Counted from the first letter of the stretch, positions 21,571-48,000 are shown. The stretch: 64,000 nt of DNA from Haliotis rufescens (GCF_023055435.1 NW_025963890.1:23560001-23624000); one strand, 5' to 3'. Notes: generated from the letters alone by a model not told the origin. Numbers and translations are program-made.

Positions 21571-22397
21571 TTTTAATGTATGATCTCCCCGTGACAGGGA
21601 AAACGCGTGTTATCTATTCATATGTTCTGTCCAGCCATTAACAAATCCATGCCCTCTCTTTCCAATACCTCATGTATAAAATTGACTTAATTACGGATTT
21701 TGCCTATATGTTGAGTAAAGTTGAATCCAAATGTAAGCCCAGGGCTTAAAAACGAAAAAGGACGAATGACAGGAAGAATGAACGTCCCAAGTGTAATGAA
21801 ACAATACTCATAAGTCGAATGAGAGAGCAACATCTTAACAGAAGAGATTAATTTTCCTTTCAACTTGAAAATTATGAGTCAAGAGGGCTAAGTCACGAGG
21901 GGTTTAAAATAAGTGCAGTCCCGGTACCTTTAGGAAAAGACGTGCAAGTCCTTGAGTAATATTGTCCATTCAAAGTTTAAATAATATAAGAATATAGATA
22001 ACTACGATAATAGCATACTAATTAAAATATCCAAACGGTTTCACGAAATTATTTTGATTTGCCCGGCATTAATAACAGAAACCGATCAACATACGTACAA
22101 AGGTAGCGAGTTTTAACCGCTGCATGCCTGTCTTCACAAACCACGTTCGAATCCCGATTCGCCCCGATTATGTTTCTAGGTTTGTCAGACCATACCTGTT
22201 TAAACCTGTTTTGTGAATGCTACACAGCGTCTATTCAGAATATGAGAGGATCTTCTTAAATTTTATTTTAAAAGTAAAAGTTGCTGAATTTCTTGACTTC
22301 AACGTGTATAAATGTGAGCCAAAACACATTATTTTGAAGCCAACACTACGACGCCGAGGATTACAAATGTATATGATTCATGTTTTTGATGCTCCAG

Positions 22398-22746
22398 TGG
22401 TCATCGTTGGCATCTTTGGGCCCTGAGGTCGTGTGCACGAAGATGCCGGACAGTGTTCAGAGGTCACCACAGCGTTCGAGGATCTCTTGATGCCGCCGAG
22501 CGGGGCGATGCGAACGACATTGTCTCCCTTGCTCCACATGAAGATTTCACACTGGCTCCCAACACCTCGTGGTGGGAGGTCGTGGAGAGAAGAGAGGCGG
22601 AAGATCCCACTTTCGGTGAGGATTTGGTGATAGCACCAGAGTACTGTGTGGAAGACGAGGTTTTGAGCTATGACCCCGACTACTGCCTGAAGCCGGGCGC
22701 CCTCTGGTGGGAGGTCGTGGAGGCCCAGGAGAAGGCTGGGAGCTGA
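22398..22746 (+). pseudogene. Frameshifted last-exon remnant of the WWEVVE membrane-protein gene
   Basis: Acceptor gctccag retained, but atctttgggccctga versus atcttcttggccctga shifts the frame to an immediate TGA; upstream exons not found. Confidence 0.7.
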
Positions 22747-23276
22747 ACAAAGAACTTTAGGGACTAATGGTCCCCGGTGACACATGGAAACCCGGACATC
22801 AGTTAAACAGTCTCTCGGACAGATGTCCCAGATGCTTCAAGCTCACGGTTCATCTTCACATCTGATGACAGGATGTCTCCATAAAGCTGTGAAAGACCCG
22901 TTCCTTTGTGAACACAACTGTGGCAGTAATACGTCATGGTTTTTGTCATGCCAAGGAGAGTATATACACAGATGTACAGGGATGTGTTCCCATTGTTTAA
23001 GCAGCCACTTTATTTATATGTTTCAGACTTTGGTGATATCTCTTTTATATGATTTTACATCTTTCCTGTTATGTAAATGTTATGCAATAAATCCTAGGTT
23101 GTTACTTTATCCTTTGTTGTCAGATGTTTTAACAGCATCCAGACGCTGACAGTTGGTGAGTCTGTAGTAGATGTTCCACCAGCATTGTCATGGTTTGCGA
23201 TCGGTAACAGATAGACGCTGTAACAGTATTATACAGTCTCGGGGTCGCTGATATCGTCGAAGTGACGTTAAATGTT

Positions 23277-23580
23277 AACTCACTCACTTACCTACCCACT
23301 CACTAACCCATTAACTTGAACACCCACACACCCGCTCAATCACTCACTTACCCAACCACTCCCCGACTCATTTCACTCACGCACTCACCGACTCATTTTA
23401 CTCACTCACGTACTCACTCACTCACTCACCGACACATTTCACTTATACTCACTCACTCACTCACACACCGACTCATTTCACTTACACTCACTCACTCATT
23501 TCACTTACACTCACTCACTCATTTCACTTATACTCACTCACTCACTCACCGACTAATTTCACTCACTCACTCACTCACTG
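23277..23580 (+). repeat. (ACTC)n-rich micro/minisatellite grown from a retroposon tail (also about 27448-27750 and 31061-31320)
   Basis: actcactc and atttcacttatactcactc repeats following gacgttaaatgttaactcactc; length differs between units. Confidence 0.85.
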
Positions 23581-24066
23581 TTGCATTTTCAAACGCAATA
23601 AATCATTCATTGGTGTGAAAGGATACCAGTCGTATAAGACGTCGCAATGCGCTGGGCAGAGATGCGTCCATTAAGAGTGCCCGCAACTTGTGCTTGTGGT
23701 TGTCATGCCAGATTCGCCCTGATAATGTTTCTACGTTTGTCAGCACCATCACCTTCATCGTTGGATGTATTTGCCTGTACCACATCCCGTCTACATGAAG
23801 CTGACACACCTGATATAACTAAAATAATGTTAAAACCTAATCTTACTCAGTCACTCACTAAAACATATTGACTGTGGTATGGTCATTTTACATGAAAATA
23901 CCATTGACCCGTAAAGCTTGTGTTGAGTATATGCTAAGGCTTCTAGCCATTGATCCCGAATCACAAATGTATAAACAAGAAACACGAATATTTTCACAGA
24001 ACTGGTACACCCAAGAACATCTGCCAAAGTGTTTTGTATGAGCTTATTTTATAAGTGATTTATTTC

Positions 24067-25137
24067 CAATCTCATTAAAATCAGATCTTAGTTCTCGCTA
24101 CCGTTAAACAAAGATCTGAGGACATCCCATTACGGGTCACATCAGACCAACCTTGCGCGAACTTTGACCGACCAATGAAATGACTGACAAGAACACTCCC
24201 CTACCCAGAGTTCCATGCGGCCGGCAGCCAGCTAGCATAGTACCTCTGCCACAGGCCAGCGCCATGTGACGATTCGTCACATCTTTCACAGTCCATTCAA
24301 GATATTGTATATGCTTTTCATCCGTTTCATGTTTGACAAGTCTACACATTTTCATAAACAAATGTCAAAGAATGGTTAACTTTCATTTAGAAAGTATGCA
24401 AATACGTAAAAATCTACTTGTTTTTGCGTGGTTATCCTATGTTTACATTGGTTGTACGGCTCCACGTGCTGTCATCGAAGCCCAACGGAGAGCTAGCGAC
24501 ACGGTCACTTTGATGCATAAATATATATTGTCATGCAACTCACTGTCGCAGTTGTAGTAGCATATCTATATAGTTAAGCAAAACAATATGTAAAGCGCCT
24601 CCAAATACTTGCATTAGTCCGTTCTATACTGATTTCTGAAAAAGCGCGTTTGTTTACAAACAAGAGAAAAGTCCGGTCACGTGATATGCAAATTAGCCTG
24701 TGGCAGTGGTGTTATGCTGGGTCACCACTGCGACGGAGTGTGTGACAAGAAGTCCACATTAGCCAATCAGAAGGCAGCTTTCTCGTGCTTTAGGGCACTA
24801 ATTTCAAATTGGCGACTACGCTTCGAAACATATTTTGACAAATTCTCCATTCAAAAATTGAAACCTGAACAAAAACACATTCTGGAATGGCCAATAGATG
24901 GTCTAGATTGTATGGATTCAGTCGTTAAACCCGTAACTGTCGTTCGGAATAACCCGTGTTAAAGTTTTCGAGGTTGCAAGATTAGAAATCCCATTCCGAC
25001 TGTCACTTTCATGATGTGGTAAGCGACGCTCTGATTAGGGGTCGGATGAAAGGTCGTTCTGACGTGACCCGTAATGGGATGTCCTCAGATCTTTGTTCAG
25101 CGGTAGCGAGAACTAAGATATGATTTTAATGAGATTG
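24067..25137. mobile_element. AcademH-like non-autonomous DNA transposon with RecQ fragment (unit 1, with nested insertion)
   Basis: ~88-bp TIRs beginning CAATCTCATTAAAATC; 10-bp TSD gatttatttc at 24057-24066 and 25138-25147; internal FSIQKLKPEQKHILEWPIDGLDCM. Confidence 0.75.
24194..24742. mobile_element. Nested non-autonomous TIR element with 9-bp TSD
   Basis: tgacaagaa at 24185-24193 and 24743-24751; CACTCC...GGAGTGTG ends; imperfect inverted repeats ctgccacaggc/gcctgtggcag; empty site in the other two units. Confidence 0.8.
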
Positions 25138-25397
25138 GATTTATTTCCCACGTTGCATGTAGGTATTTCCATTCGAATTTTATATCAATTCCAAAATATG
25201 TCCAATTCTCAAACAAAACTTTACATTTATGTAATCTACCGGGAAGATACATTTAACGATGATCATGAGCTCTGTGGTAGCGATTCACAAAAGGCTATGC
25301 CCTTCTTCACAAAACACGTTAACCATAGAGTTACCTGCCCTTGAGCAATGGTATCTAAGGGTGTGACGTCACAGACAGTGACGATTGCGCTACTTGC

Positions 25398-26917
25398 ATG
25401 ATGCCGTCTTTATCTTTAGCGCCTGCTGTATCGACACATTTTCGCGACATGCCGTCAATATCAACTCTTCCTACGAGGTAAGTTATCCACTTCTTTACCA
25501 TTGAAAGCAGAAGCAATCGCATATGGGAGAAACAATTTAATGTGTGTGTTATAATATTTACTTGATAGTGTATTGATTGTATAATTTATTGGGTTTTGTA
25601 TAGGCATACTTGTAGAAGCAAAATTATTCGCGCATTTCAAAAACATGTATAGCGAGTACATTTTGATTGGTATATTTTGATGCATATATATATTAGTAAT
25701 AATGTATATAATTATATATTCCCGAACGAACTGTGACTAATTATTAATATGTATTTTGTCAACTTGTTGCGATATCATTAAAGAAAAGAGAGACAAGATA
25801 TCGCCCGCCGTAACTTATGTTTCACATAGAAAGCAACAGAAGACGATAGTTTGTGTTTGCCTCACTTAAATCCCGTTTGTGTGTTTTAATATACTAAACT
25901 TACATCTTGTTTTGAACTGATGTAGTGTGCCTATTTAAAAATAGTAACATTGTTTCAGATTGCCGAGCATCGAGATTGGGATTCAGTCTCGAATGAACTA
26001 TGTCAAAGGTAAATTTACTTCTGTAGTTAGTTTTAGTTTTCCAAAAGGGAATGTGTGTTGACAGAAAGGCCTGAAAACCATATGGATTAAATAAAACCGT
26101 TCTACCAGAAAACACGCCTCAGTGTCTAGAATGTTTTAATTACAATCTATTAAAACTAAAACCAACGATTTAAGGACGTTATCTAATCAATACATTTATG
26201 TTTTCAGATATAATAACCGGCCAAAGTCACATGGTCCTTATAATCTGCTCAATCTTTGTTGGAGGTGGTAAGTATATTTTCTACGACAGGTGTATAAGTG
26301 GCAATTCAATCGCGTCAACACGGAATCCTCATTTTCTGCAAAACTTCACAATATACAAGTAGCCCAAACTATATATTCAAAATTTGGATCAAAAAGGATT
26401 GTCTGACATTCTCACTCTGTCTTTGTAAAAGCGGATATACGTTGCTGCCTTACATGTGGAGATTGTATCAACACATGAGGGTGTTATGGGTGATCCGAAG
26501 CTATATTTGTAGCCATAAAACGATGTTGTTTTTCACAAATCATTGAGTCATGTTTCTGATTTTCCAGTGGTCATCGTGGGCATCTTCTTGGCCCTGAGGT
26601 CGTGTGCACGAAGATGCCGGACAGTGTTCAGAGGTCACCACAGCGTTCGGGGATCTCTTGATGCCGCCGAGCGGGGCGATGCGAACGACATTGTCTCCCT
26701 TGCTCCACATGAAGATTTCACACTGGCTCCCAACACCTCGTGGTGGGAGGTCGTGGAGAGAAGAGAGGCGGAAGATCCCACTTTCGGTGAGGATTTGGTG
26801 ATAGCACCAGAGTACTGTGTGGAAGACGAGGTTTTGAGCTATGACCCCGACTACTGCCTGAAGCCGGGCGCCCTCTGGTGGGAGGTCGTGGAGGCCCAGG
26901 AGAAGGCTGGGAGCTGA
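25398..26917 (+). CDS. Unrecognised 179-aa single-pass membrane protein with two WWEVVE repeats, copy A; exons 25398-25477, 25959-26008, 26208-26267, 26568-26917
   Basis: Canonical splice sites (ag|gtaagt, tttcag|, ag|gtaaat, ttttcag|, tg|gtaagt, ttccag|) in compatible phases give 540 nt without internal stops; TM helix MVLIICSIFVGGVVIVGIFLAL spans exons 3-4; AATAAA at 27257-27262. Confidence 0.8.
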
Positions 26918-28237
26918 ACAAAGAACTTTAGGGACTAATGGTCCCCGGTGACACATGGAAACCCGGACATCAGTTAAACAGTCTCTCGGACAGATGTCCC
27001 AGATGCTTCAAGCTCACGGTTCATCTTCACATCTGATGACAGGATGTCTCCATAAAGCTGTGAAAGACCCGTTCCTTTGTGAACACAACTGTGGCAGTAA
27101 TACGTCATGGTTTTTGTCATGCCAAGGAGAGTATATACACAGATGTACAGGGATGTGTTCCCATTGTTTAAGCAGTCACTTTATTTATATGTTTCTGACT
27201 TTGGTGATATCTCTTTTATATGATTTTACATCTTTCCTGTTATGCAAATGTTATGCAATAAATCCTAGGTTGTTACTTTATCCTTTGTTGTCAGATGTTT
27301 TAACAGCATCCAGACGCTGACAGTTGGTGAGTCTGTAGTAGATGTTCCACCAGCATTGTCATGGTTTGCGATCGGTAACAGATAGACGCTGTAACAGTAT
27401 TATACAGTCTCGGGGTCGCTGATATCGTCGAAGTGACGTTAAATGTTAACTCACTCACTTACCTACCCACTCACCAACCCATTAACTTAAACACCCACAC
27501 ACCTGCTCAATCACTCACTTACCCAACCACTCCCCGACTCATTTCACTCACTCACTCACCGACTCATTTTACTCACTCACGTACTCACTCACTCACTCAC
27601 TCACCGACACATTTCACTTATACTCACTCACTCACTCACACACCGACTCATTTCACTTACACTCACTCACTCATTTCACTTACACTCACTCACTCATTTC
27701 ACTTATACTCACTCACTCACCGACTAATTTCACTCACTCACTCACTCACTGTAGCATTTTCAAACGCAATAAATCATTCATTGGTGTGAAAGGATACCAG
27801 TCGTATAAGACGTCGCAATACGCTGGGCAGAGATGCGTCCATTAAGAGTGCCCGCAACTTGTGCTTGTGGTTGTCATGCCAGATTCGCCCTGATAATGTT
27901 TCTACGTTTGTCAGCACCATCACCTTCATCGTTGGATGTATTTGCCTGTACCACATCCCGTCTACATGAAGCTGACACACCTGATATAACTAAAATAATG
28001 TTAAAACCTAATCTTACTCAGTCACTCACTAAAACATATTGACTGTGGTATGGTCATTTTACATGAAAATACCATTGACCCGTAAAGCTTGTGTTGAGTA
28101 TATGCTAAGGCTTCTAGCCATTGATCCCGAATCACAAATGTATAAACAAGAAACACGAATATTTTCACAGAACTGGTACACCCAAGAACATCTGCCAAAG
28201 TGTTTTGTATGAGCTTATTTTATAAGTGATTTATTTC

Positions 28238-28751
28238 CAATCTCATTAAAATCAGATCTTAGTTCTCGCTACCGCTAAACAAAGATCTGAGGACATCCCA
28301 TTACGGGTCACATCAGACCAACCTTGCGCGAACTTTGACCGACCAATGAAATGACTGACAAGAAGTCCACATTAGCCAATCAGAAGGCAGCTTTCTCGTG
28401 CTTTAGGGCACTAATTTCAAATTGGCGACTACGCTTCGAAACATATTTTGACAAATTCTCCATTCAAAAATTGAAACCTGAACAAAAACACATTCTGGAA
28501 TGGCCAATAGATGGTCTAGATTGTATGGATTCAGTCGTTAAGCCCGTAACTGTCGTTCGGAATAACCCGTGTTAATGTTTTTGAGGTTGCAAGATTAGAT
28601 CTCCCATTCCGACTGTCACTTTCATGATGTGGTAAGCGACGCTCTGATTAGGGGTCGGAAGAAAAGGTCGTTCTGACGTGACCCGTAATGGGATGTCCTC
28701 AGATCTTTGTTCAGCGGTAGCGAGAACTAAGATATGATTTTAATGAGATTG
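28238..28751. mobile_element. AcademH-like non-autonomous element (unit 2)
   Basis: Same TIRs and gatttatttc TSD as 24067-25137, without the nested insertion. Confidence 0.75.
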
Positions 28752-29011
28752 GATTTATTTCCCACGTTGCATGTAGGTATTTCCATTCGAATTTTATATC
28801 AATTCCAAAATATGTCCAATTCTCAAACAAAACTTTACATTTATGTAATCTACCGGGAAGATACATTTAACGATGATCATGAGCTCTGTGGTAGCGATTC
28901 ACAAAAGGCTATGCCCTTCTTCACAAAACACGTTAACCATAGAGTTACCTGCCCTTGAGCAATGGTATCTAAGGGTGTGACGTCACAGACAGTGACGATT
29001 GCGCTACTTGC

Positions 29012-30530
29012 ATGATGCTGTCTTTATCTTTAGCGCCTGCTGTATCGACACATATTCGCGACATGCCGTCAATATCAACTCTTCCTACGAGGTAAGTTAT
29101 CCACTTCTTTACCATTGAAAGCAGAAGCAATCGCATATGGGAGAAACAATTTAATGTGTGTGTTATAATATTTACTTGATAGTGTATTGATTGTATGATT
29201 TCTTGGGTTTTGTATAGGCATACTCGTAGAAGCAAAATTATTCGCGCATTTCAAAAACATGTATAGCGAGTACATTTTGATTGGTATATTTTGATGCATA
29301 TATATATTAGTACAATGTATATAATTATATATTCCCGAACGAACTGTGACTAATTATTAATATGTATTTTGTCAACTTGTTGCGATATCATTAAAGAAAA
29401 GAGAGACAAGATATCGCCCGCCGTAACTTATGTTTTACATAGAAAGCAACAGAAGACGATAGTTTGTGTTTGCCTCACTTAAATCCCGTTTGTGTGTTTT
29501 AATATACTAAACTTACATCTTGTTTTGAACTGATGTAGTGTGCCTATTTAAAAATAGTAACATTGTTTCAGATTGCCGAGCATCGAGATTGGGATTCAGT
29601 CTCGAATGAACTATGTCAAAGGTAAATTTACTTCTGTAGTTAGTTTTAGTTTTCCAAAAGGGAATGTGTGTTGACAGAAAGGCCTGAAAACCATATGGAT
29701 TAAATAAAACCGTTCTACCAGAAAACACGCCTCAGTATCTAGAATGTTTTAATTACAATCTATTAAAACTAAAACCAACGATTTTAGGACGTTATCTAAT
29801 CAATACATTTATGTTTTCAGATATAATAACCGGCCAAAGTCACATGGTCCTTATAATCTGCTCAATCTTTGTTGGAGGTGGTAAGTATATTTTCTACGAC
29901 AGGTGTATAAGTGGCAATTCAATCGCGTCAACACGGAATCCTCATCTTCTGCAAAACTTCACAATATACAAGTAGCCCAAACTATATCTTCAAAATTTGG
30001 ATCAAATAAGATTGTCTGACATTCTCACTCTGTCTTTGTAAAAGCGGATATACGTTGCTGCCTTACATGTGGAGATTGTATCAACACATGAGGGTGTTAT
30101 GGGTGATCCGAAGCTATATTTGTAGCCATAAAACGATGTTGTTTTTCACAAATCATTGAGTCATGTTTCTGATTTTCCAGTGGTCATCGTGGGCATCTTC
30201 TTGGCCCTGAGGTCGTGTGCACGAAGATGCCGGACAGTGTTCAGAGGTCACCACAGCGTTTGGGGATCTCTTGATGCCGCCGAGCGGGGCGATGCGAACG
30301 ACATTGTCTCCCTTGCTCCACATGAAGATTTCACACTGGCTCCCAACACCTCGTGGTGGGAGGTCGTGGAGAGAAGAGAGGCGGAAGATCCCACTTTCGG
30401 TGAGGATTTGGTGATAGCACCAGAGTACTGTGTGGAAGACGAGGTTTTGAGCTTTGACCCCGACTACTGCCTGAAGCCGGGCGCCCTCTGGTGGGAGGTC
30501 GTGGAGGCCCAGGAGAAGGCTGGGAGCTGA
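29012..30530 (+). CDS. WWEVVE membrane protein, copy B; exons 29012-29091, 29572-29621, 29821-29880, 30181-30530
   Basis: Same intact exon structure as copy A; substitutions P3L, F15I, R->W, Y->F. Confidence 0.8.
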
Positions 30531-31808
30531 ACACAGACCTTTAGGGACTATTGGTCCCCGGTGACACATGGAAACCCGGACATCAGTTAAACAGTCTCTC
30601 GGACAGATGTCCCAGATGCTTCAAGCTCACGGTTCATCTTCACATCTGATGACAGGATGTCCCCATAAAGCTGTGAAAGACCCGTTCCTTTGTGAACACA
30701 ACTGTGGCAGTAATACGTCATGGTTTTTGTCATGCCAAGGAGAGTATATACACAGATGTACAGGGATGTGTTCCCATTGTTTAAGCAGCCACTTTATTTA
30801 TATGTTTCAGACTTTGGTGATATCTCTTTTATATGATTTTACATCTTTCCTGTTATGTAAATGTTATGCAATAAATCCTAGGTTGTTTCTTTATCCTTTG
30901 TTGTCAGATGTTTTAACAGCATCCAGACGCTGACAGTTGGTGAGTCTGTAGTAGATGTTCCATCAGCATTGTCATGGTTTGCGATCGGTAACAGATAGAC
31001 GCTGTAACAGTATTATACAGTCTCGGGGTCGCTGATATCGTCGAAGTGACGTTAAATGTTAACTCACTCACTTACCTACCCACTCACCAACCCATTAACT
31101 TAAACACCCACACACCTGCTCAATCACTCACTTACCCAACCACTCCCCGACTCATTTCACTCACTCACTCACCGACTCATTTTACTCACTCACTCACTCA
31201 CCGACACATTTCACTTATACTCACTCACTCACACACCGACTCATTTCACTTACACTCACTCACTCATTTCACTTATACTCACTCACTCACTCACCGACTA
31301 ATTTCACTCACTCACTCACTGTAGCATTTTCAAACGCAATAAATCATTCATTGGTGTGAAAGGATACCAGTCGTATAAGACGTCGCAATGCGCTGGGCAG
31401 AGATGCGTCCATTAAGAGTGCCCGCAACTTGTGCTTGTGGGTTGTCATGCCAGATTCACCCTGATAATGTTTCTACGTTTGTCAGCACCATCACCTTCAT
31501 CGTTGGATGTATTTGCCTGTACCACATCCCGTCTACATGAAGCTGACACACCTGATATAACTAAAATAATGTTAAAACCTAATCTTACTCAGTCACTCAC
31601 TAAAACATATTGACTGTGGTATGGTCATTTTACATGAAAATACCATTGACCCGTAAAGCTTGTGTTGAGTATATGCTAAGGCTTCTAGCCATTGATCCCG
31701 AATCACAAATGTATAAACAAGAAACACGAATATTTTCACAGAACTGGTACACCCAAGAACATCTGCCAAAGTGTTTTGTATGAGCTTATTTTATAAGTGA
31801 TTTATTTC

Positions 31809-32322
31809 CAATCTCATTAAAATCAGATCTTAGTTCTCGCTACCGCTAAACAAAGATCTGAGGACATCCCATTACGGGTCACATCAGACCAACCTTGCGC
31901 GAACTTTGACCGACCAATGAAATGACTGACAAGAAGTCCACATTAGCCAATCAGAAGGCAGCTTTCTCGTGCTTTAGGGCACTAATTTCAAATTGGCGAC
32001 TACGCTTCGAAACATATTTTGACAAATTCTCCATTCAAAAATTGAAACCTGAACAAAAACACATTCTGGAATGGCCAATAGATGGTCTAGATTGTATGGA
32101 TTCAGTCGTTAAGCCCGTAACTGTCGTTCGGAATAACCCGTGTTAATGTTTTTGAGGTTGCAAGATTAGATCTCCCATTCCGACTGTCACTTTCATGATG
32201 TGGTAAGCGACGCTCTGATTAGGGGTCGGAAGAAAAGGTCGTTCTGACGTGACCCGTAATGGGATGTCCTCAGATCTTTGTTCAGCGGTAGCGAGAACTA
32301 AGATATGATTTTAATGAGATTG
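31809..32322. mobile_element. AcademH-like non-autonomous element (unit 3)
   Basis: Same TIRs and TSD as unit 2. Confidence 0.75.
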
Positions 32323-32582
32323 GATTTATTTCCCACGTTGCATGTAGGTATTTCCATTCGAATTTTATATCAATTCCAAAATATGTCCAATTCTCAAACA
32401 AAACTTTACATTTATGTAATCTACCGGGAAGATACATTTAACGATGATCATGAGCTCTGTGGTAGCGATTCACAAAAGGCTATGCCCTTCTTCACAAAAC
32501 ACGTTAACCATAGAGTTACCTGCCCTTGAGCAATGGTATCTAAGGGTGTGACGTCACAGACAGTGACGATTGCGCTACTTGC

Positions 32583-34102
32583 ATGATGCTGTCTTTATCT
32601 TTAGCGCCTGCTGTATCGACACATATTCGCGACATGCCGTCAATATCAACTCTTCCTACGAGGTAAGTTATCCACTTCTTTACCATTGAAAGCAGAAGCA
32701 ATCGCATATGGGAGAAACAATTTAATGTGTGTGTTATAATATTTACTTGATAGTGTATTGATTGTATGATTTCTTGGGTTTTGTATAGGCATACTTGTAG
32801 AAGCAAAATAATTCGCGCATTTCAAAAACATGTATAGCGAGTACATTTTGATTGGTATATTTTGATGCATATATATATTAGTACAATGTATATAATTATA
32901 TATTCCCGAACGAACTGTGACTAATTATTAATATGTATTTTGTCAACTTGTTGCGATATCATTAAAGAAAAGAGAGACAAGATATCGCCCGCCGTAACTT
33001 ATGTTTCACATAGAAAGCAACAGAAGACGATAGTTTGTGTTTGCCTCACTTAAATCCCGTTTGTGTGTTTTAATATACTAAACTTACATCTTGTTTTGAA
33101 CTGATGTAGTGTGCCTATTTAAAAATAGTAACATTGTTTCAGATTGCCGAGCATCGAGATTGGGATTCAGTCTCGAATGAACTATGTCAAAGGTAAATTT
33201 ACTTCTGTAGTTAGTTTTAGTTTTCCAAAAGGGAATGTGTGTTGACAAAAAGGCCTGAAAACCATATGGATTAAATAAAACCGTTCTACCAGAAAACACG
33301 CCTCGGTATCTAGAATGTTTTAATTACAATCTATTAAAACTGAAACCAACGATTTAAGGACGTCATCTAATCAATACATTTATGTTTTCAGATATAATAA
33401 CCGGCCAAAGTCACATGGTCCTTATAATCTGCTCAATCTTTGTTGGAGGTGGTAAGTATATTTTCTACGACAGGTGTATAAGTGGCAATTCAATCGCGTC
33501 AACACGGAATCCTCATCTTCTGCAAAACTTCACAATATACAAGTAGCCCAAACTATATCTTCAAAATTTGGATCAAATAAGATTGTCTGACATTCTCACT
33601 CTGTCTTTGTAAAAGCGGATATACGTTGCTGCCTTACATGTGGAGATTGTATCAACACATGAGGGTGTTATGGGTGATCCGAAGCTATATTTGTAGCCAT
33701 AAAACGATGTTGTTTTTTCACAAATCATTGAGTCATGTTTCTGATTTTCCAGTGGTCATCGTGGGCATCTTCTTGGCCCTGAGGTCGTGTGCACGAAGAT
33801 GCCGGACAGTGTTCAGAGGTCACCACAGCGTTCGGGGATCTCTTGATGCCGCCGAGCGGGGCGATGCGAACGATATTGTCTCCCTTGCTCCACATGGAGA
33901 TTTCACACTGGCTCCCAACACCTCGTGGTGGGAGGTCGTGGAGAGAAGAGAGGCGGAAGATCCCACTTTCGGTGAGGATTTGGTGATAGCACCAGAGTAC
34001 TGTGTGGAAGACGAGGTTTTGAGCTATGACCCCGACTACTGCCTGAAGCCGGGCGCCCTCTGGTGGGAGGTCGTGGAGGCCCAGGAGAAGGCTGGGAGCT
34101 GA
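32583..34102 (+). CDS. WWEVVE membrane protein, copy C; exons 32583-32662, 33143-33192, 33392-33451, 33753-34102
   Basis: Same intact exon structure; P3L, F15I and E->G relative to copy A. Confidence 0.8.
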
Positions 34103-35914
34103 ACAAAGAACTTTAGGGACTAATGGTCCCCGGTGACACATGGAAACCCGGACATCAGTTAAACAGTCTCACGGACAGATGTCCCAGATGCTTCAAGCTC
34201 ACGGTTCATCTTCACATCTGATGACAAGATGTCTCCATAAAGCTGTGAAAGACCCGTTCCTTTGTGGACACAACTGTGGCAGTAATACGTCATGGTTTTT
34301 GTCATGCCAAGGAGAGTATATACACAGATGTACAGGGATGTGTTCCCATTGTTTAAGCAGCCACTTTATCTATATGTTTCAGACTTTGGTGATATCTATT
34401 TTATATGATTTTACATCTTTCCTGTTATGTAAATGTTATGCAATAAATCCTAGGTTGTTACTTTATCCTTTGTTGTCAGATGTTTTAACAGCATCCAGAC
34501 GCTGACAGTTGGTGAGTCTGTAGTAGATGTTCCACCAGCATTGTCATGGCTTGCGATCTGTAACAGATAGACGCTGTAACAGTATTTTACACTGTCGGGG
34601 TCGCTGATATTGCCTTACCGACGTAAAATGTTTACTTCTATACTTCTATGGTGTTCCCACAGAGAACCGAAACCGTAACAAGAGGGTATGTGTGACACGC
34701 AAACACCCCTCCCTCTGAGCAAGGCAACCCTGTTACCTCCAAACCTGCAGATGGTGGTGTGGTCAGGCTACACGATGATGTTTACTTCTTATTAATATTA
34801 TATGTGTTATTAATTTCTTTATTATTGATGTGTTTCCGCCAATCCGTCTGTATGACACTGTATCTACTGTGTGTAAAGCGATTGCGTTCTTTGTCCAAGT
34901 CAGATGAATGTTCATGATAATACACCGCCGGGCAAGAGAAAGTATACACCCATGTTTGATAGTGGCTTAAACTAAGACAAACTAAGACATAGTTATTCGA
35001 TGTTGATGTGTTTGATACGGGTATAGACCTAAAGTTTTCAGCGTTTTCAGCCTAATAACATTTGTTTTGATAACGTTTGTAATGTTTTGATCAAATCCAA
35101 GTTTCAAATGTATGCTTTCTTCTGTCCGGTAGTGTAGTACATGAATAACGTTATAGTGTACACAGATGATGCAGGCATGTACTAATTGCTTGGTCAGTGA
35201 ATCAATTTCCACGGAACGACTTGCAATTTAGTTATACCCCCATAAACGCAAAAATATTGAAGGCAATCTTAAATAAATAAACTGCAAGTGAATACGGTTT
35301 TTTCTCCATTAAGGCAAAAACATGTTGAAGTCAATTCTTACAGATAAATACGTCAACAATACTAACTTCACAGAATGCTCATTAAATAATTAACACACAA
35401 AAGACCGTAGACAACAATATGGAATCAGTGACATCGTTCAGTGCAATACAATCTCATAAACATCATATCTTAGTTCTCGCAACCGCTTTGTTTAGCGTGG
35501 CCCTATTCCCTTTATCGATTTATGGGAACATGGACGCATAAAAATTTGCTTGGCATGTCATGCCATGGAATCACTTGCAATGCATGAATTAGTTAGTAAA
35601 GTGGCTCTTTATTTCATGTGACATGCCAACAACAAATAGTATTAATATTACCCCAATCTTATAAATACATAACATGGCCTAAATATCAGCGACACGGATA
35701 TTGGACGGGTGTGTCACCGACGATCCTGTAGTCATTTACGTAAACAGATTTAGTACAATAGAGTGATCTCCCTTACTAACTCTTCCACTCAAGCTCCTTC
35801 CCAGCGCGTGACACCTTCGTTACACTCTCGGTATAGTATAGAGAGCTCCGCGAACGGTCTATCGCTGTGAGGAGCTTGCTCTTCCACTGTGCTTGTGTTC
35901 TGTCTGATTCCGCA

Positions 35915-38900
35915 ATGGGTGGCTGGAAACTCGAAGTGTTTAAAGTAAGATTTTAATTCACGTGTTGTGTGTATTACGAATATTGTATTCATATTTGCCG
36001 GTCCAGGAGATCATGACTAAAGCGGCATACAACAGACCAACCTCAACCAGGTTTAGTCGATCAGTGCTTGTAGTTGTATGACCTATACAGCGAGGCTAAA
36101 GTATCTCCACACAAACAAGCTAGGCCCCTAAAATGTAGCCTACAAGCTTTAAAAATATTTACTCGAATTTTATAAGTCGGAGTCGGATATTTCAATCAAA
36201 GGATAATAGTTTAAGATTACAATAATACCCCAAATGCTGTTTGTTGGTACCCTAATCAGTGTATATTATCACGAAACTTGTGATATTTTTCCCTAGTCCT
36301 AATATTTTGGATTTATTTATGTTTTCACTCAAGCGCAGATGCTGTGTTGTTTGTTCTTGTTTGTTCAAAGTAACGAGTTATGTATCAATGACAGGGTGTC
36401 ATAAATAAACTGCACTAGTTTTTGAGACTGAGATAATGCAAATTTGTTGTCATTATGCTTACCTGGGTGATGTGAGGGAAATGTTTAGCTTAGGCCGCAG
36501 GCATGGGCAGAATTCTGGTCAGTTGTTTGGGCACTATTGGCTCAGTTGTCTGAGGTGTCATAATTAGCTGTGCAAAGTTGCACCCCTAAGCCATGCAAGA
36601 ATCTGATGATCTCATTGAACACAACACACTCATAGTCTTTCTTGTTGTGACACAACTACCATTAGTATTTAATCATTTCAAATGGCAGAATATTCTCATA
36701 GCTGTTTGTTATTTTAGTGTACTATAATCAATTTTTATCATTACAGTTTAGTTTAATAAAGAGCAATTTGCCTTTCGTGGGTAAACATCAATACATGTAT
36801 GGAAGAAGTTGTGCCTGTTGCTGTAGTTATATATAAGTAGCTGTGTGCATGTCTTAAGTCTTTGAAAGGCATTTAGAAGTGACACACATGAGGTGAAGGA
36901 GTAAGTATATACTCCGAAACATGTTCCTCATGGTAAAGAAGCTGGCACCCATAAATTCTCTTCCTTATGCTTTTGTCAGAAAAAAGGGAAATTATATGTT
37001 TATCTATATAGTTTCTTCATCTCCATGCTAGATCTATTTAGAAATAGATTGTGGTGAAGAAATTAACTCAGGAAAGGTAACTTTGCTATGCTGTAATAAG
37101 ATAGAAACATGGGCTGTTACGTTCCTTCAATATGAAGCATTTTGTTGCAGATGGCTGTGTACATGAGCTTCCCTGTGTCACTGTTCTACTACTTCAACCA
37201 ACCCGAGTTCTTTGAGGACTGGATGATGAGCAAGAGGGTAATATTCGGTTTGCTGGTCATGCAACAATCAGTCAACCTAATATCAAAGTTGGCCTTGCTG
37301 TAACCATTTGTGTATACTTATATAACAGTGGGGTATAATGAGGGACATAATAGAGAATATTACTTGACTCTATGTCATACTAAATCATTTTCTGTCACAA
37401 ATGGTGTATTTCTCAAAGGTGGCCAAGGGAGATACATGGATTCTGTTTCATGAAATCACACACACACAAATATAATTACTTGTTTATTACCCACACTGTT
37501 GAGTAAGAAGTAAACATACCCTATGAGGTCAAGACAGTTCAACAGAAATCAACTGATTGACCTCATTCATGTACATGTATGAGTAGTATGTGGTTTTGTG
37601 TAAACTCACATTTACATGAACATGCACAAACCCATTTTCTGATTGAAACAAAAGAAAGGATGGCTCGTAATTTGGGATGTTAGGCACCAAACACTATGAC
37701 AAAACTAAGCTTACTCCATGATCGAAGTATTTGATACAAATGCATCTAGTACTCATATTTGTTATGTTTATTGAAGAGAATGGTTTCTAGGTGTTATGAC
37801 AATTCAGTTCATGTGTTTGTTGTTGTAGAGTGTCAATCCTAAATAATAATATTAAACGGAAAATTATCATTTCAGAATCAGCTCTTCCCACCTCAAGACA
37901 AGAATGCTGTAAGCATGATAGTTTGATACTCTTGTCCTCACTGTAATTTTCTTCATAGCAATGCCGATAAATTGTGCCCTATCTGTGTACTTAAACATTG
38001 TCATGTCATTATGCAGTGTGCCACATCTAAATGTCTTATTTGTAGCTGAAGGATGTATTGTGTGATGCCTACAGCTAGCCTAGACATGTCCTCTCTGAAC
38101 TGTTGCAGCCAGCCTAGACATGTCCTCTCTAAACTGTTGCAGCCAGCCTAGACATGTCCTCTCTGAACTGTTGCAGCTAGCCAAGACATGTCCTCTCTGA
38201 ACTGTTGCAGCCAGCCCAGACATGTCCTCTCTGAACTGTTGCAGCCAGCCTAGACATGTCCTCTCTGAACTGTTGCAGCCAGCCTAGACATGTCCTCTCT
38301 GAACTGTTGTAGCCAGCCTAGACATGTCCTCTCTGAACTGTTGCAGCCAGCCTAGACATGTCCTCTCTGAACTGTTGCAGCCAGCCTAGACATGTCCTCT
38401 CTGAACTGTTGTAGCCAGCCTAGACATGTCCTCTCTGAACTGTTGCAGCCAGCCAAGACATGTCCTCTCTGAACTGTTGCAGCTAGCCAAGACATTGTCA
38501 CAAAACCACTCGCCTTGTATCACTTTTCTAATGCAAATCTAAAATCATGCCCACAAGCTTGATATCTACCTTGTCTAGGGTGATTATTCTATCGATCCCA
38601 ATACATGATACCACCCATTTCTTTATTGTTCTTAAATTATTTCAATCGAAAGAAGTCAACTGGCCACCTTGAAACCATCTGGGCACAAATAGCCGACATC
38701 AGAACGTCACAGAATGGGAGCATGTTGGAAAGCAGCTCCATTACCGTCAGTGTAATCTGGTAGTAATGACATTCATGTATATAATCCACTGTTGACAACA
38801 TAGTCCATCCACTCAAAGGTTCATAATGTCAGGACAGGATGTCATTCTACTGGTATTGTCTATGTTCCTTCACAGTCTAAATAGGGAGTCTATACAGATT

Positions 38901-39433: not shown

Positions 39434-39664
39434 TCTTAGGATACAGTGTGTATCATGTATATATGTACATAACCATGGAGATATGCTGTAGCTCATCGTG
39501 TGTGTGTGGACAGTCAGAGAGAGTCAGTCATTTTGAACTTGTACACAGGAAATTAAACAAGATAAATACATATGCATTTGCCATGTGGTTTTTCTTTCAT
39601 TGTTTCATATATTTCATGCTTTCTATAACAGAGATAATGGGAGACAGATGATCTAAGGGAGAAC

Positions 39665-40897
39665 CACTCAATCTGGGTCACTATGACTGAACAGTCGATA
39701 CTGTGAGACAGGTGCCCCACTCAATCTGGGTGACTACATGACTGAACAGTCGATACTGTGAGACAGGTGCCCCACTCAATCTGGGTGACTACATGACTGA
39801 ACAGTCGATACTGTGAGACAGGTGCCCCACTCAATCTGGGTGACTACATGACTGAACAGTCGATACTGTGAGACAGGTGCCCCACTCAATCTGGGTGACT
39901 ACATGACTGAACAGTCGATACTGTGAGACAGGTGCCCCACTCAATCTGGGTGACTACATGACTGAACAGTCGATACTGTGAGACAGGTGCCCCACTCAAT
40001 CTGGGTGACTACATGACTGAACAGTCGATACTGTGAGACAGGTGCCCCACTCAATCTGGGTGACTACATGACTGAACAGTCGATACTGTGAGACAGGTGC
40101 CCCACTCAATCTGGGTGACTACATGACTGAACAGTCGATACTGTGAGACAGGTGCCCCACTCAATCTGGGTGACTACATGACTGAACAGTCGATACTGTG
40201 AGACAGGTGCCCCACTTAATCTGGGTGACTACATGACTGAACAGTCGATACTGTGAGACAGGTGCCCCACTCAATCTGGGTCACTATGACTGAACAGTCG
40301 ATACTGTGAGACAGGTGCCCCACTCAATATGGGTGACTACATGACTGAACAGCCGATACTGTGAGACGGGTGCCCCACTCAATATGGGTCACTATGACTG
40401 AACAGTCGATACTGTAAGACAGGTGCCCCACTCAATCTGGGTGACTACATGACTGAACAGTCGATACTGTGAGACAGGTGCCTCACTCAATCTGGGTGAC
40501 TACATGACTGAACAGTCGATACTGTGAGACAGGTGCCCCACTCAATCTGGGTCACTATGACTGAACAGTCGATACTGTGAGACAGGTGCCCCACTCAATC
40601 TGGGTCACTATGACTGAGTAAAAGGCAACTATGCTTGTCGTAAGAGGCGACTAATGGGATTGGGTGCTGACCTGGTTGATGCATGTCATCGTATCCCAAC
40701 TGTGTGGATCAATGCGCATGATTTCAATCACTGCATTGTCTGCTCCAGACTCGATTATTTACAGACAGCCGTCTTATAGCTGGAATATTGCTGAGTGTGG
40801 CATTGAACAACAAACAAACAAACACTCAATCTGGGTCACTATGACTGAACAGTCGATACTGTGAGATAGGTTACCCACTCAATCTGGGTCACTATGA
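39665..40897. repeat. 55-bp minisatellite (53-bp variants), about 18 copies, interrupted by SINEs
   Basis: Unit actcaatctgggtgactacatgactgaacagtcgatactgtgagacaggtgcccc. Confidence 0.95.
40618..40823 (+). mobile_element. 5'-truncated Meta/MESC-core SINE
   Basis: atgcttgtcgtaagaggcgactaa core; tail gctggaatattgctgagtgtggcattgaac(aaac)n. Confidence 0.75.
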
Positions 40898-41759: not shown

Positions 41760-42388
41760 ACTAGGAAACTATATTCTAGACCTATGTTGTAACACTTATA
41801 TACCTCGGTAAATAGACTAGATTCTAGACCGATGTTGTAACACTTATATACCTCGGTAAATAGACTAGATTCTAGACCGATGTTGTAACACTTATATACC
41901 TTGGTAAATAGACTAGATTCTAGACCGATGTTGTAACACTTATATACCTCGGTAAATAGACTAGATTCTAGACCTAAGTTGTAACGCTTACATACCTCGT
42001 TAAATAGACTAGATTCTAGACCTTTGTTGTAACCCTTTTATACCTCGGTAAATAGCCTAGATTCTAGACCTATGTTGTAACACTTATATACCTCGGTAAA
42101 TAGACTAGATTCTAGACCTATGTTGTAACACTTACATAACTCGGTAAATAGACTAGATTCTAGACCTATGTTGTAACACTTTTATACCTCGGTAAATAGA
42201 CTAGATTCTAGACCTATGTTGTAACACTTATATACCTCGGTAAATAGACTAGATTCTAGACCTATGTTGTAACACTTATATAACTCGGTAAATAGACTAG
42301 ATTCTAGACCTATGTTGTAACACTTATATACCTCGGTAAATAGACTAGATTCTAGACCTATGTTGTAACAGTTACATGCCTTGGTAAA
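41760..42388. repeat. 48-bp minisatellite, about 13 copies
   Basis: Unit ctagattctagacctatgttgtaacacttatatacctcggtaaataga. Confidence 0.95.
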
Positions 42389-42456
42389 TGTGTATCAACG
42401 TGTTCCAATTATGTGCATCTCTATATAGGTGTATCAGCGTATTCCAATCGCGTTGA

Positions 42457-45085: not shown

Positions 45086-48000
45086 ATGAACATTGAAGTC
45101 AGTGGGCGTATCCGTCCCCTTGTCCCAGGTGAGGGGAAGGAAAACTTATCAATTGAAGGAACACAAAGGCTGACAGCTCCAGGAGGACACTTCTTCCAGT
45201 AAATACTTACCTTCTTTCAACAATACACATTTTGTAATATTAATTTCTTTTAATTTAATGTCAATTCAAAATGTCCAGTATAAAGACTAATGTGTTTGTT
45301 TTCAGTGTTATCCAATAATCCTATAATTATGATGATAATGGTTAAACATGTCAGAGCTAGAAATGGGGATTCACAGGCATCAAAAATCCCCCTCCTGAAA
45401 TCCACACATTATGAAACCAAATCACAGTAAAATTATGAAAATGCAGACAGAGTCATCCATATGTTACTGTCTTGTTTAAAATCTTTTCTCTACATTGAGG
45501 TTAAGAGTTTGGATCTATCTATGTTAACTCTTGTTTTCTTCAAAATGAAGGTTTTCTGCTAATGTATGATAAGTTTACTGAAATCAAAAATAAGTCCAGC
45601 ATCACTTTTGTAAATCTAATATATTATCATTATTAATTTGAACATGTTTACAAATTTTTAGCAAGGAAGGATTTAAAAAAACTTTATTTAGGTAAACATC
45701 ATTTAACAAACACAATCTCAATTTTCTAGCTTCCAGAACCTTTTCAGGAGGGAATCGACCACATATGACATCTTCCGGAACTCGGTCGAGCTGCTGCTGG
45801 AGATGCTGATGTCAGGCTTCAATGTGTGTCTGCTGGTGACGGGGGAGAGTGGGTCGGGCAAGTCCTACACTATGGCAGGGGAGAGCAGCGCCAGGGCGGG
45901 ACTTGTACAGATGGTCTTCGATTACCTCTTTGCCAAACTCATGGAAGGTGAGCTACTGAAACAAAAATAATAGTCTTCCTGCATATTTGACTCAGTCATT
46001 TTTGCTCAATATGTCATGAAATTTGGTATATGTGGACTTAGTAGTGACAACATACGTTCCGATATTTTATATTTTGGCATTTCCTTTCACTATAACTAGT
46101 ATAAGGAAACATCATCTCCTCAGAAACCACTGGACCAATGATGCTGAAACTTCACATACTTGTTCCCACCAATGAGGACACCTAAAATTATTCAAGAGGT
46201 TCGAATCCAATTTTCAACATGGCTGCTACATCAGCCATTTACTTGACCAGTTTTTTATAGAATGTAACAAAATTTGGTGTTTCTTTAGTATGTTGTGGGA
46301 ATGAACAAACATGTTCCGTTCTATTTTAGCCCAAAAAATTAAAATAAGATCTTTTACTCCAATACTATGCCTCTCTGCATGAAAGTCTGCCACGTGTCAA
46401 GCCTTCTTAATTCTCGTTACGAGTGAGCGAGGCATTCAAAACAGCATATGTTTTTTTTTCGTCTTGAAAACACGCTTGAACGACTTTTCCTGAATGTACA
46501 TATAAATGAAGACTGTGCCATTATATTACTGTTGATATTGTATACACCCTATTATTCCTGAGCTTTGTGGCATCTAAACCCAAAGGCTGTCATTTTTGTG
46601 TGCTGTGTGGGTTTCATTTTGCTAAACTCAATATTTCCAAATCAAGTAATAAAGAAATACAGCCAAATTATCAGCTGACATTTCACTGGCTCAGGAACCC
46701 ACTCATCCCTCATTTAGATTGGGCAATCAAAGATAGCTCAGCGTTCACCTGATGCGACCTTATATGGAGGTGTCCTCATATCTTAACACAAAGAGATATT
46801 GTATCGGAGTAAAAGATTGGTTATGATCATAGTGTTGAACTTTGTCAGGTATGTTTCTCTTTATGATGACATCATATTTTGTTCAAATAATTGGAGTTCA
46901 ATATTTATGCAGAAAACATTGGAATATCAATGCTGGTGGCAACTTTTGTTAAGTGGCTATCTTTATTGATATTGTAAGCTACAGTGCTGTGGCACAATGT
47001 TTATACCCTCTTGGCAGAAACTTTCATCTTTCAAATGATGCATCAAACCACTAAGTCCTGCTCTATAGAATATACTGGTAGGTCCCCAGCAACCTATGCT
47101 TGTCATACGAGGCGACCAAATGGATAGGGTCTTTCAGGTAGTTACTGGCAACCAATTCTCATAAGAGACGGAGGTTACAAAGGACCAATTCATATAAGAA
47201 TCGTGTTACAAGGGACCAATTCTTATAAGAGACGGAAGTTACAAAGGACCAATTCTCATAAGAGACGGAGGTTACAAAGGACCAATTCATATAAGAATCG
47301 TGTTACAAGGGACCAATTCTTATAAGAGACGGAGGCTACAAAGGACCAATTCATATAAGAATCGTGTTACAAGGGACCAATTCTTATAAGAGACGGAGGT
47401 TACAAAGGACCAATTCATATAAGAATCGTGTTACAAGGGACCAATTCTTATAAGAGACGGAGGTTACAAAGGACCAATTCATATAAGAATCGTGTTACAA
47501 GGGACCAATTCTTATAAGAGACGGAGGTTACAAAGGACCAATTCATATAAGAATTGTGTTACAAGGGACCGATTCTTATAAGAGACGGAGGTTACAAAGG
47601 ACCAATTCATATAAGAATCGTGTTACAAGGGACCGATTCTTATAAGAGACGGAGGTTACAAAGGACCAATTCATATAAGAATCGTGTTACAAGGGACCAA
47701 TTCTTATAAGAGACGGAGGCTACAAAGGACCAATTCATATAAGAATCGTGTTACAAGGGACCAATTCTTTTAAGAGACGGAGGTTACAAAGGACCAATTG
47801 ATATAAGAATCATGTTACAAGGGACCAATTCTTATAAGAGAAGGAGGTTAAAAAGGACCAATTCATATAAGAATTGTGTTACTAGGGACCAATTCTTATA
47901 AGAGACGGAGGTTACAAAGGACCAATTCATATAAGAATCGTGTTACAAGGGACCAATTCTAATAAGAGACGGAGGTTACAAAGGACCAATTCATATAAGA

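Follow-up and report, generated by a model that had tools for sequence, protein, structure and literature searches.

BNIP3, NIX and FUNDC1 are small, membrane-anchored proteins that display a cytosolic W/Y-x-x-L/V core in an acidic or Ser context, and the W-V-E-L of BNIP3/NIX resembles the motif core of the array protein described here. In BNIP3/NIX this LC3-interacting region (LIR) is N-terminal and the anchor C-terminal. Other systems with points of likeness are LAT and PAG, type III transmembrane adaptors signalling via phosphorylated tail tyrosines, and calsyntenin-1 (Alcadein), a single-pass protein with a signal peptide, a large cadherin ectodomain and two Trp-centred motifs in an acidic cytosolic tail. 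We analysed a 64,000-nucleotide stretch of the Haliotis rufescens genome (the window, from whose first letter all coordinates are counted) in which an initial annotation had described a tandemly amplified orphan gene for a single-pass membrane protein with two WWEVVE repeats, read as LIRs.

Organisation of the tandem array

Self-BLAST of the unit at 25000-28610 against the window delimited a tandem array of a 3.6-kb unit, individual units measuring 3.57-3.61 kb with 98-98.4% identity. The array contains three intact four-exon genes and one 5′-truncated, frameshifted relic. The four-exon model and the three intact copies put forward in the initial annotation were reproduced from the window in coordinates, splice sites and translation, each copy having a CDS of 540 nt (179 aa plus stop), while self-BLAST added a fourth, partial unit at 22363-24193 that was missing from that annotation.

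22363-34636, plus strand: whole tandem array, comprising partial unit 0, full units 1 and 2, and unit 3 (self-BLAST)
22398-22746, plus strand: exon 4 of the copy 0 relic (self-BLAST and translation)
25298-25397, plus strand: copy 1 proximal promoter and 5′ leader, about 100 bp conserved with the paralogues on contig C434
25398-25477, plus strand: copy 1 exon 1, 80 nt, with start codon M1 and alternative M18
25959-26008, plus strand: copy 1 exon 2, 50 nt
26208-26267, plus strand: copy 1 exon 3, 60 nt with phase 1 on either side, encoding the first half of the transmembrane (TM) helix
26568-26917, plus strand: copy 1 exon 4, encoding the remaining half of the TM helix, the basic Cys patch, the acidic tail together with its two WWEVV modules, and the stop
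27257-27262, plus strand: AATAAA of copy 1, 340 nt past the stop; equivalents at 30870 (copy 2), 34442 (copy 3) and 23086 (relic)
29012-30530, plus strand: copy 2 gene, exons 29012-29091, 29572-29621, 29821-29880 and 30181-30530
32583-34102, plus strand: copy 3 gene, exons 32583-32662, 33143-33192, 33392-33451 and 33753-34102
27452-27750, plus strand: (ACTC)n-rich minisatellite block, one per spacer, the others at 23278-23588 and 31060-31320 (self-BLAST)
28236-28753, no strand assigned: spacer element with 90-bp inverted arms (28236-28325 and 28664-28753); other instances at 24065-25139, with a 550-bp insert inside, and 31807-32324 (self-BLAST)

All nine introns follow the GT-AG rule, running from GTAAGT or GTAAAT to a polypyrimidine tract and CAG, and the three proteins differ at five residues. 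The protein of copy 2 is identical, letter for letter, to RefSeq XP_048255221.1 (H. rufescens LOC124146160, "uncharacterized"), and copies 1 and 3 match XP_048255191.1 and XP_048255192.1 (alignment rows P0007 and P0008, translations read against the alignment). The gene models are thus already in RefSeq as uncharacterized loci (LOC124146160, LOC124146161 and LOC124146168); these records and those of the Haliotis orthologues give no function, family or literature. The promoter of copy 1 holds a perfect CRE (TGACGTCA) at 25364-25371, repeated in copy 2 (28978-28985) and copy 3 (32549-32556), and this roughly 100-bp promoter with its CRE at -34/-35 is shared by paralogues whose coding dS is 0.5-1.3. 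The inverted-arm spacer element lies about 260 bp upstream of each ATG. The relic has lost exons 1-3 and the promoter; its tail part is otherwise intact apart from a 1-nt deletion near 22416-22419 that leads to a TGA at 22424-22426 (ancestral frame).

Exons, introns and spacers of the array copies are equally alike, at about 99% identity, and the copies are homogenised species-wide, which together indicate recent duplication or concerted evolution; the amplification for dosage put forward in the initial annotation is a conjecture beyond this pattern. Unit 3 ends at the (ACTC)n-rich block, and since the homology of this last unit stops just before it, the block is a candidate site of unequal exchange.

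Protein layout, conservation and relatives

In the array protein a 51-aa N-terminus leads into a single TM helix, which is followed by a basic juxtamembrane patch with Cys residues and by an acidic tail of 87 aa with a net charge of -17. As the initial annotation had it, the N-terminus carries no signal peptide or hydrophobic leader, and AlphaFold2 (AF2) predicts the single TM helix with confidence. By TM positions the N-terminus of family members spans 34-56 aa, and this short segment evolves fast. Within the tail are two copies of a module of about 27 aa ending in WWEVV (D-[FY]-x-L-x-P-x3-W-W-E-V-V), with E-D-L-V-I-A-P-E-Y between the copies; this duplication, also noted at the outset, is significant, since in four members of the family the local alignment of the tail halves outscored all of 5000 shuffles. 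In each of the eight proteins tested the 15 residues after the TM helix have a net charge of +4 to +5, those before it -3 to +1, from which a type III (N-out, C-in) topology may be inferred by rule of thumb. Within the patch C76 is invariant in the alignment and a second Cys follows at +4 (group A) or +6/+9 (group B); a similar rule of thumb makes these cysteines probably palmitoylated. The charge-hydropathy boundary puts the tail among disordered segments, and its AF2 pLDDT is below 60, with short helices exactly at both WWEVV motifs. Flank charges, charge-hydropathy plot and pLDDT suggest that the tail lies in the cytosol and is disordered.

Between the two paralogue groups, and among the four species of Haliotis compared, the tail hardly varies. 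In an alignment of 15 sequences 53 of the 59 invariant columns fall at or after residue 93, and the tail tyrosines Y146 and Y159 are invariant, Y155 nearly so. Between the paralogue groups dN/dS is 0.16 for the tail (dS 0.5) versus 0.35-0.44 for the N-terminus and TM region. Intact frames were found in five genes of the H. rufescens genome and in three other species, both paralogue groups having orthologues in H. cracherodii, H. rubra and H. asinina. The orthologues of the array proteins measure 179 aa in H. cracherodii, 162 aa in H. rubra and 177 aa in H. asinina. Pfam gave no family match, only sub-threshold TM-driven hits; a PDB profile search gave nothing significant (best E 1.1) and an Atlas search no usable match; among 1.84 billion representative proteins a profile search recovered the Haliotis cluster alone. 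By these searches the gene family is restricted to Haliotis and, as first proposed, belongs to no known family. The label of orphan has to be qualified: within the genus the gene has paralogues, distant relatives and orthologues in three species. Taken together, these comparisons indicate a gene that is real, under selection and abalone-specific.

Contig C434 carries a two-gene paralogue locus with the exon number and intron phases of the array and exon lengths of 80/44/60/341 nt versus 80/50/60/350. Contig C223 carries, at G000:C223:56.55-57.02 Mb, at least seven distant relatives in which the array module is followed by 1 to about 30 acidic 36-aa repeats; LOC124280718 is a member from H. rubra. 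These genes are likewise unannotated or uncharacterized. Over 24 aa their first tail module shares 67% identity with the C-terminal module of the array protein (BLASTP E 2e-6; hhalign probability 96%). As in the array, a phase-1 intron that follows a 54/60-nt exon interrupts the TM helix, and a basic juxtamembrane stretch comes after the helix. The repeat unit retains L-W-x-[DE]-[VI] and EDLV-x-AP-Y. Unlike the array genes, they have terminal open frames of 108 to 1157 aa, the long ones built of up to about 30 36-aa repeats rather than two modules, and C or A replaces the second Trp; no similarity between the upstream exons of the two was detectable. The array, C434 and C223 genes have in common a TM helix split in phase 1, a juxtamembrane stretch of basic character, and acidic tail modules containing both L-W-x-[DE]-[VI] and EDLV-x-AP-Y; on these features we define a Haliotis TM plus acidic W-repeat superfamily.

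Candidate roles of the WWEVV modules

We give about an even chance to the proposal that the three recently duplicated or homogenised, Haliotis-restricted genes encode a small type III single-pass membrane-anchored adaptor, adaptor being meant as the name of a class and not of a mechanism. The N-terminal segment would face the lumen or the outside, the Arg/Cys juxtamembrane patch, probably palmitoylated, would keep the tail at the cytosolic leaflet, and the disordered acidic tail would display its two docking modules to a conserved putative cytosolic partner, recruited bivalently and presumably through disorder-to-order binding. Distant paralogues on another contig iterate the module (core L-W-x-[DE]-[VI]) up to about 30 times, so that the family looks like multivalent membrane scaffolds of graded valency. 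Two points tell against this adaptor reading. The tail is conserved along its entire length to a degree unusual for a carrier of short linear motifs that is purely disordered, and for a multi-repeat relative AF2 proposes, at low confidence, a β-solenoid, at odds with the helices that it gives for the two-module protein.

The initial annotation took the WWEVVE motifs for LIRs and the protein for a receptor of selective autophagy, anchored in the membrane as BNIP3/NIX or FUNDC1 are, which we regard as unlikely. The minimal [WFY]xx[ILV] core does occur twice per motif, as WWEV and as WEVV, in all ten members scanned, within a tail that is acidic and probably both disordered and cytosolic, and W-x-[DE]-[VI] is the core that the distant C223 modules keep (WCEV, WADI). 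However, this core is too short and common to carry much information, and neither the cLIR nor the xLIR pattern (PMC5119064) matches anywhere in the tail, at either motif copy, in any of the ten members tested; xLIR was designed to match all 27 verified LIRs (PMC5119064). Each module conserves about 27 residues, far more than a LIR; AF2 gives a helix there (at low confidence), whereas bound LIRs form an extended strand; and the relatives with about 30 repeats resemble no known autophagy receptor. Besides the TM anchor there is a 51-aa variable N-terminus with no recognised domain, and no cargo-binding part is evident. The TM anchor itself could define the cargo membrane. The case for an autophagy role is a weak one, resting on a four-residue match.

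That the tail is instead a folding repeat domain, for example a β-solenoid-like or cation-dependent acidic repeat of which the long C223 proteins are the full version, we also consider doubtful. It would account for near-invariance along the entire tail, and the tail unit is homologous with the 36-aa tandem repeat family, for which an AF2 single-sequence model of a 318-aa multi-repeat relative shows three strands per repeat in a β-solenoid (repeat pLDDT 60-76, pTM 0.54). Only one of the five models reached such confidence, however (means 56.8, 50.6, 37.8, 36.7 and 33.2), and Foldseek returned no PDB match at E ≤ 0.001. AF2 tends to build regular solenoids from perfect repeats. A solenoid moreover needs more than two modules, and the predictions for the two-module tail point to disorder.

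A LAT/PAG-type adaptor signalling through phosphorylated conserved tail tyrosines appears improbable. In its favour are the predicted type III layout, in which the N-terminal ectodomain is short and has no signal peptide, a juxtamembrane Cys pair (the second Cys 4-6 residues after C76) and conserved tyrosines in acidic contexts. But those contexts (EYCVE, SYDPD, DYCLK) are non-canonical, containing no YxxPhi, YxN or ITAM/ITIM; the Pfam, PDB and 1.84-billion-protein searches found no homology to any TRAP; and it is the Trp modules, not the tyrosines, that are best conserved.

Proteins of the C112 and C434 arrays have two W-x-[DE]-[VI] modules each, those of the C223 cluster as many as about 30. 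It is equally improbable that abalones have evolved a superfamily of membrane-anchored multivalent receptors of their own, in which these modules serve as atypical docking sites for the ATG8 family or another trafficking hub. If true, gene copy and repeat number would tune the avidity with which a conserved cytosolic machine is recruited to a particular membrane, and the family would represent a receptor system for selective autophagy or trafficking that is specific to this lineage and lacks any counterpart in model organisms.

Kinesin-light-chain W-acidic motifs, which would make the protein a kinesin-1 cargo adaptor, fit the tail no better than LIRs do, and we rate this reading as very unlikely. 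Such motifs have a Trp flanked by Asp/Glu, as in EWD, and Leu or Met at p-2 (PMC6214655). The layout matches that of calsyntenin-1, two Trp motifs sitting in the acidic cytosolic tail of a TM protein, and L-x-W-E fits motif 2 in every member, the SKIP motif TNLEWDDSAI having Leu at p-2 (PMC6214655). Against this, the p-2 Leu is missing from motif 1 in most members, [DE]W[DE] is found nowhere, the Trp having no acids on both sides, V-V follows where known motifs have acidic or small residues, and the second Trp, the would-be p0, is C or A in the C223 relatives.

Least credible of all is an annotation artefact or non-functional frame, in which a duplicated segment splices into an open frame by chance: five of the six within-array coding differences are non-synonymous and exons are conserved no more than introns, but very recent copies give such a pattern regardless of function, and the low dN/dS of the tail between paralogue groups, the frames intact across genes and species, and the conserved intron phases and promoter block all speak against it.

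Comparison with known systems

With BNIP3, NIX and FUNDC1 the likeness is a works-like analogy only. The array protein has its anchor mid-protein and its motifs C-terminal, the reverse of the BNIP3/NIX order, and has no homology to these proteins and no BH3 or other domain. Calsyntenin-1 shares the two Trp-centred motifs in an acidic tail, but it is not homologous, the array protein has neither its ectodomain nor its signal peptide, and its motifs are of the [DE]-W-D-D type (PMC6214655) versus W-W-E-V-V. LAT and PAG are likewise not homologous and differ in their canonical SH2-binding Tyr motifs, and the CxxxC spacing of the array protein varies between paralogue groups; what the array protein has in common with them is the predicted type III layout, a very short ectodomain, juxtamembrane cysteines and a probably unstructured tail that would act as a docking platform.

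Gene structure of the tandem array and its surroundings

We rebuilt the gene copies from the sequence between 25398 and 34102 and could reproduce the spliced four-exon model, intact in three copies, that the initial annotation had proposed. Exons of 80, 50, 60 and 350 nt in each of copies 1-3 join into a 540-nt coding frame with a TGA stop, and the nine introns have GTAAGT or GTAAAT at the 5′ end and a pyrimidine tract followed by CAG at the 3′ end. Five positions (P3L, F15I, R91W, E112G and Y155F) distinguish the three 179 amino acid products, and AATAAA lies 340 nt 3′ of each stop codon. M18 is conserved as an alternative start to M1 and is where the H. rubra gene model starts; codons 1-17 display no codon-position bias between paralogues, and either Met may be the start. 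Self-BLAST gave two full units, 3.61 and 3.57 kb long, and the last unit ends at 34636, directly before the expected place of the (ACTC)n-rich block seen in the other spacers. A further copy, copy 0, which is absent from the initial annotation, is a 5′-truncated, frameshifted relic retaining just exon 4 and the final 33 bp of intron 3, with a 1-nt deletion at ~22416-22419 leading to an ancestral-frame TGA at 22424-22426.

Features of the window
22363-34636: tandem array, delimited by self-BLAST with one unit as the query
22363-24193: partial unit (copy 0), further on broken by the 550-bp insert in the spacer element
25364-25371, 28978-28985 and 32549-32556: CRE, 34 nt upstream of each ATG
24065-25139, 28236-28753 and 31807-32324: spacer element with 90-bp inverted arms, ~260 bp upstream of each gene
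10268-12990, minus strand: GC-rich block (GC 0.53) with long minus-strand ORFs
38072-38495, 39664-40617, 41768-42389, 47151-51172 and 59856-60473: five large minisatellites, all downstream of the gene array
52192-52263 (+), 38.8 bits, and 5444-5515 (-), 31.2 bits: tRNA-like matches (Rfam gathering score)
8886-9053: 168 consecutive N (assembly gap or mask)

Within the GC-rich block one ORF matches reverse transcriptase (PF00078, E 1.5e-9) and another gives a weak phage-integrase SAM-like match; by these matches the block looks like a tyrosine-recombinase (DIRS/Ngaro-like) retroelement. The minisatellites have periods, in order, of 34, 55, 48, 64/97 and 28 bp, the array at 47151-51172 extending over 4 kb, and the two tRNA-like matches may be tRNA genes or the heads of tRNA-derived SINEs.

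Paralogues, promoter and constraint within Haliotis

Exon 4 (window:26570-26914:+) served as the database query and matched six proteins, every one from Haliotis; whole-protein searches used the database records it matched, and exons were joined in scripts for frame checks and dN/dS. The best match, XP_048255221.1 (LOC124146160, H. rufescens, 179 aa), has exactly the sequence of copy 2, and the translations of copies 1 and 3 agree with the LOC124146168 and LOC124146161 rows of a 15-sequence alignment. The array gene model is already in RefSeq as an 'uncharacterized protein', and a literature search for the LOC numbers and motif strings returned nothing relevant, the 'lwadis' matches being ordinary words. 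Searching the 1.33-Gb, 615-contig assembly that contains the window (G000:C112:23560001-23624000), we identified a second locus on contig C434 whose exon 4 is 76-79% identical to that of the array. Both of its copies have intact four-exon frames with intron phases as in the array (80 or 101/44/60/341 nt).

Paralogue locus
G000:C434:2295981-2303305, minus strand: two tandem copies 5.5 kb apart (loci L005, L006, L008 and L009)

Isoform X2 of LOC124115691 in RefSeq takes exons 1-2 from the upstream C434 copy and exon 3, presumably with exon 4, from the downstream one, implying that the model reads through two gene copies. Contig C445 holds an isolated tail fragment resembling the C434 group (G000:C445:20789976-20790077, locus L007; profile positions 101-134) with an in-frame TGA, probably a pseudogene relic. 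The array genes with their orthologues (group A) and the C434 genes with theirs (group B) are both found in H. cracherodii, H. rubra and H. asinina. The annotated protein clusters contain one group A sequence from H. rubra and two from H. asinina, which suggests fewer group A copies in these species.

Approximately 100 bp 5′ of the ATG can be aligned between the array and C434 genes, with no alignment further upstream. A perfect palindromic CRE (TGACGTCA) lies at -34/-35 within this promoter block in all five genes and suggests that the array genes may be under bZIP (CREB/ATF-type) control; the conserved CRE-bearing promoter identified here is a candidate for responding to cAMP or stress. We rejected a link of the gene to the inverted-repeat element of the spacer, the first instance of which carries an additional 550 bp at 24193-24743, since the promoter block conserved between paralogues begins ~160 bp downstream of the element.

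Between the two groups dN/dS (Nei-Gojobori) is 0.16 in the tail, the 87-residue acidic C-terminal part of the protein (dS 0.5), compared with 0.38-0.41 for the N-terminus and 0.35-0.44 for the transmembrane (TM) and juxtamembrane part, and 53 of the 59 invariant columns in the 15-sequence alignment fall at residue 93 or later. On comparative evidence that we call good, the array gene is real and constrained. Divergence inside the array is on a par between exons (0.74%), introns (0.8-1.3%) and spacers (0.6-2.6%), and five of six coding differences are non-synonymous; the copies are very young or undergoing homogenisation and are therefore uninformative on selection. F84 is present in all three H. 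rufescens copies where V occupies this position in five of five H. cracherodii copies and in outgroups, and every one of the five H. cracherodii copies has P121, a position held by S in H. rufescens and H. rubra. Abalone array copies are therefore shown to be homogenised within species, by concerted evolution or independent amplification per species. The amplification for dosage put forward in the initial annotation is possible.

A wider abalone family with repeated tail modules

Relatives beyond Haliotis numbered zero across Pfam, where all matches were sub-threshold and TM-driven, a profile search of PDB sequences with the array family, which matched nothing, the ESM Atlas, which gave no usable match, and a profile search of 1.84 billion representative proteins, which returned the family's own cluster alone. 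A word-index search with a 328-aa multi-repeat relative gave no match among the 8000 candidates at which it saturated. Small, tandemly duplicated, taxon-restricted membrane proteins are frequent in mollusc genomes, and the array family is well supported as one that is taxon-restricted.

A profile search of the H. rufescens genome gave three weak matches on contig C223 (profile positions 148-171), which carries a cluster of distant multi-repeat relatives.

Multi-repeat cluster
G000:C223:56.55-57.02 Mb: at least seven genes (loci L014-L022), unannotated or uncharacterized

The terminal exon of these genes encodes, in order, the second half of the TM helix, a basic stretch, a WWEVV-like module and acidic 36-aa repeats, while an upstream 54-nt exon, phase 1 at both ends, encodes the first half of the helix and has the 60-nt exon 3 as its array equivalent. 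The module is 67% identical to the C-terminal module of the array protein over 24 residues (BLASTP E 2e-6), and hhalign of alignments A1 and A3 gave a probability of 96% (E 3.9e-9). The repeat aligns to the entire inter-motif unit of the array protein (L-W-x-[DE]-[VI], then EDLV-x-AP-Y; second HSP, E 0.016). Its number ranges from 1 to ~30 copies and is very variable between adjacent genes (for example L015:739-1692:-), with open frames of 108 to 1157 aa; LOC124280718, the H. rubra counterpart, retains L-W-W-E-V. By these alignments the array gene is the two-module branch of a wider uncharacterized abalone membrane-protein family with acidic Trp-repeat tails, a definition which now covers more than 12 'uncharacterized' abalone loci. 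The description of the gene as an orphan holds insofar as our searches found no family outside Haliotis, but not within the genus, where the C434 paralogues and C223 relatives exist and the gene is annotated in RefSeq.

Membrane topology and possible roles of the tail

The single TM helix described previously corresponds to the most hydrophobic 19-mer (residues 53-71), where AF2 also places a helix (mean pLDDT 89-93 across residues 51-70). A signal peptide was rejected since no hydrophobic leader was found, in agreement with the initial annotation. The 15 residues C-terminal of the helix carry a net charge of +4 to +5 and those on the N-terminal side -3 to +1 in eight of eight proteins; by the positive-inside rule the tail is therefore predicted to be in the cytosol and the N-terminus in the lumen or outside (type III), and type II topology was rejected on these charges. 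C76 is invariant, with a second Cys at +4 in the group A proteins and +6/+9 in those of group B (15-sequence alignment), and palmitoylation of the juxtamembrane Cys is plausible. The tail has a net charge of -17 across its 87 residues and is classed as disordered by the charge-hydropathy boundary, AF2 giving pLDDT <60 except in short helices at 122-132 and 167-176, which are exactly the two WWEVV motifs. In four family members its halves align over ~27 residues, far above 5000 shuffles. A conserved site for N-glycosylation of the tail was rejected, the NTS sequon occurring in some members only.

The initial observation is confirmed, and extended by the relic copy, paralogues, superfamily and promoter, while its interpretation is only partly supported. 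Our leading reading, to which we give an even chance, is an adaptor anchored in the membrane with type III topology, which would present two docking modules on its conserved acidic tail to a cytosolic partner, with docking valency differing across the family. If the modules dock a conserved machine, the family would show the birth of a new membrane adaptor in one lineage, its valency tuned via tandem gene duplication and intragenic repeat expansion.

That the motifs are LIRs of a membrane-anchored selective-autophagy receptor, as first proposed from their LIR-like WWEVVE sequence, is unlikely. The minimal [WFY]xx[ILV] core stands at both motifs and the part kept superfamily-wide, W-x-[DE]-[VI], is LIR-shaped, but a pattern scan of the tails matched neither cLIR nor xLIR in any member, and xLIR was built to match each of the 27 verified LIRs in the iLIR paper (PMC5119064). 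Moreover the ~27 conserved residues per module are far longer than a LIR, and relatives with ~30 repeats are unlike known autophagy receptors. Slim prospects also attend a folded repeat domain, which AF2 of a 318-aa C223 relative would favour as a solenoid with three strands per repeat (repeat pLDDT 60-76, pTM 0.54); this confidence was however reached by one of five models, and Foldseek with the repeat model returned no match at E <= 0.001. Its top rows (beta-solenoids, TM ~0.3) were not relied on. A LAT/PAG-like adaptor agrees in layout and is nonetheless quite improbable, as the conserved tail tyrosines sit in no canonical SH2 context in the 15-sequence alignment. Least probable is a kinesin light chain W-acidic motif, in which the Trp is acid-flanked on both sides, as in EWD (PMC6214655), since no tail Trp has acids on both flanks and C or A stands in place of the relevant Trp in the C223 relatives, although motif 2 matches L-x-W-E and the explanation was raised on the layout that the array protein shares with calsyntenin-1.
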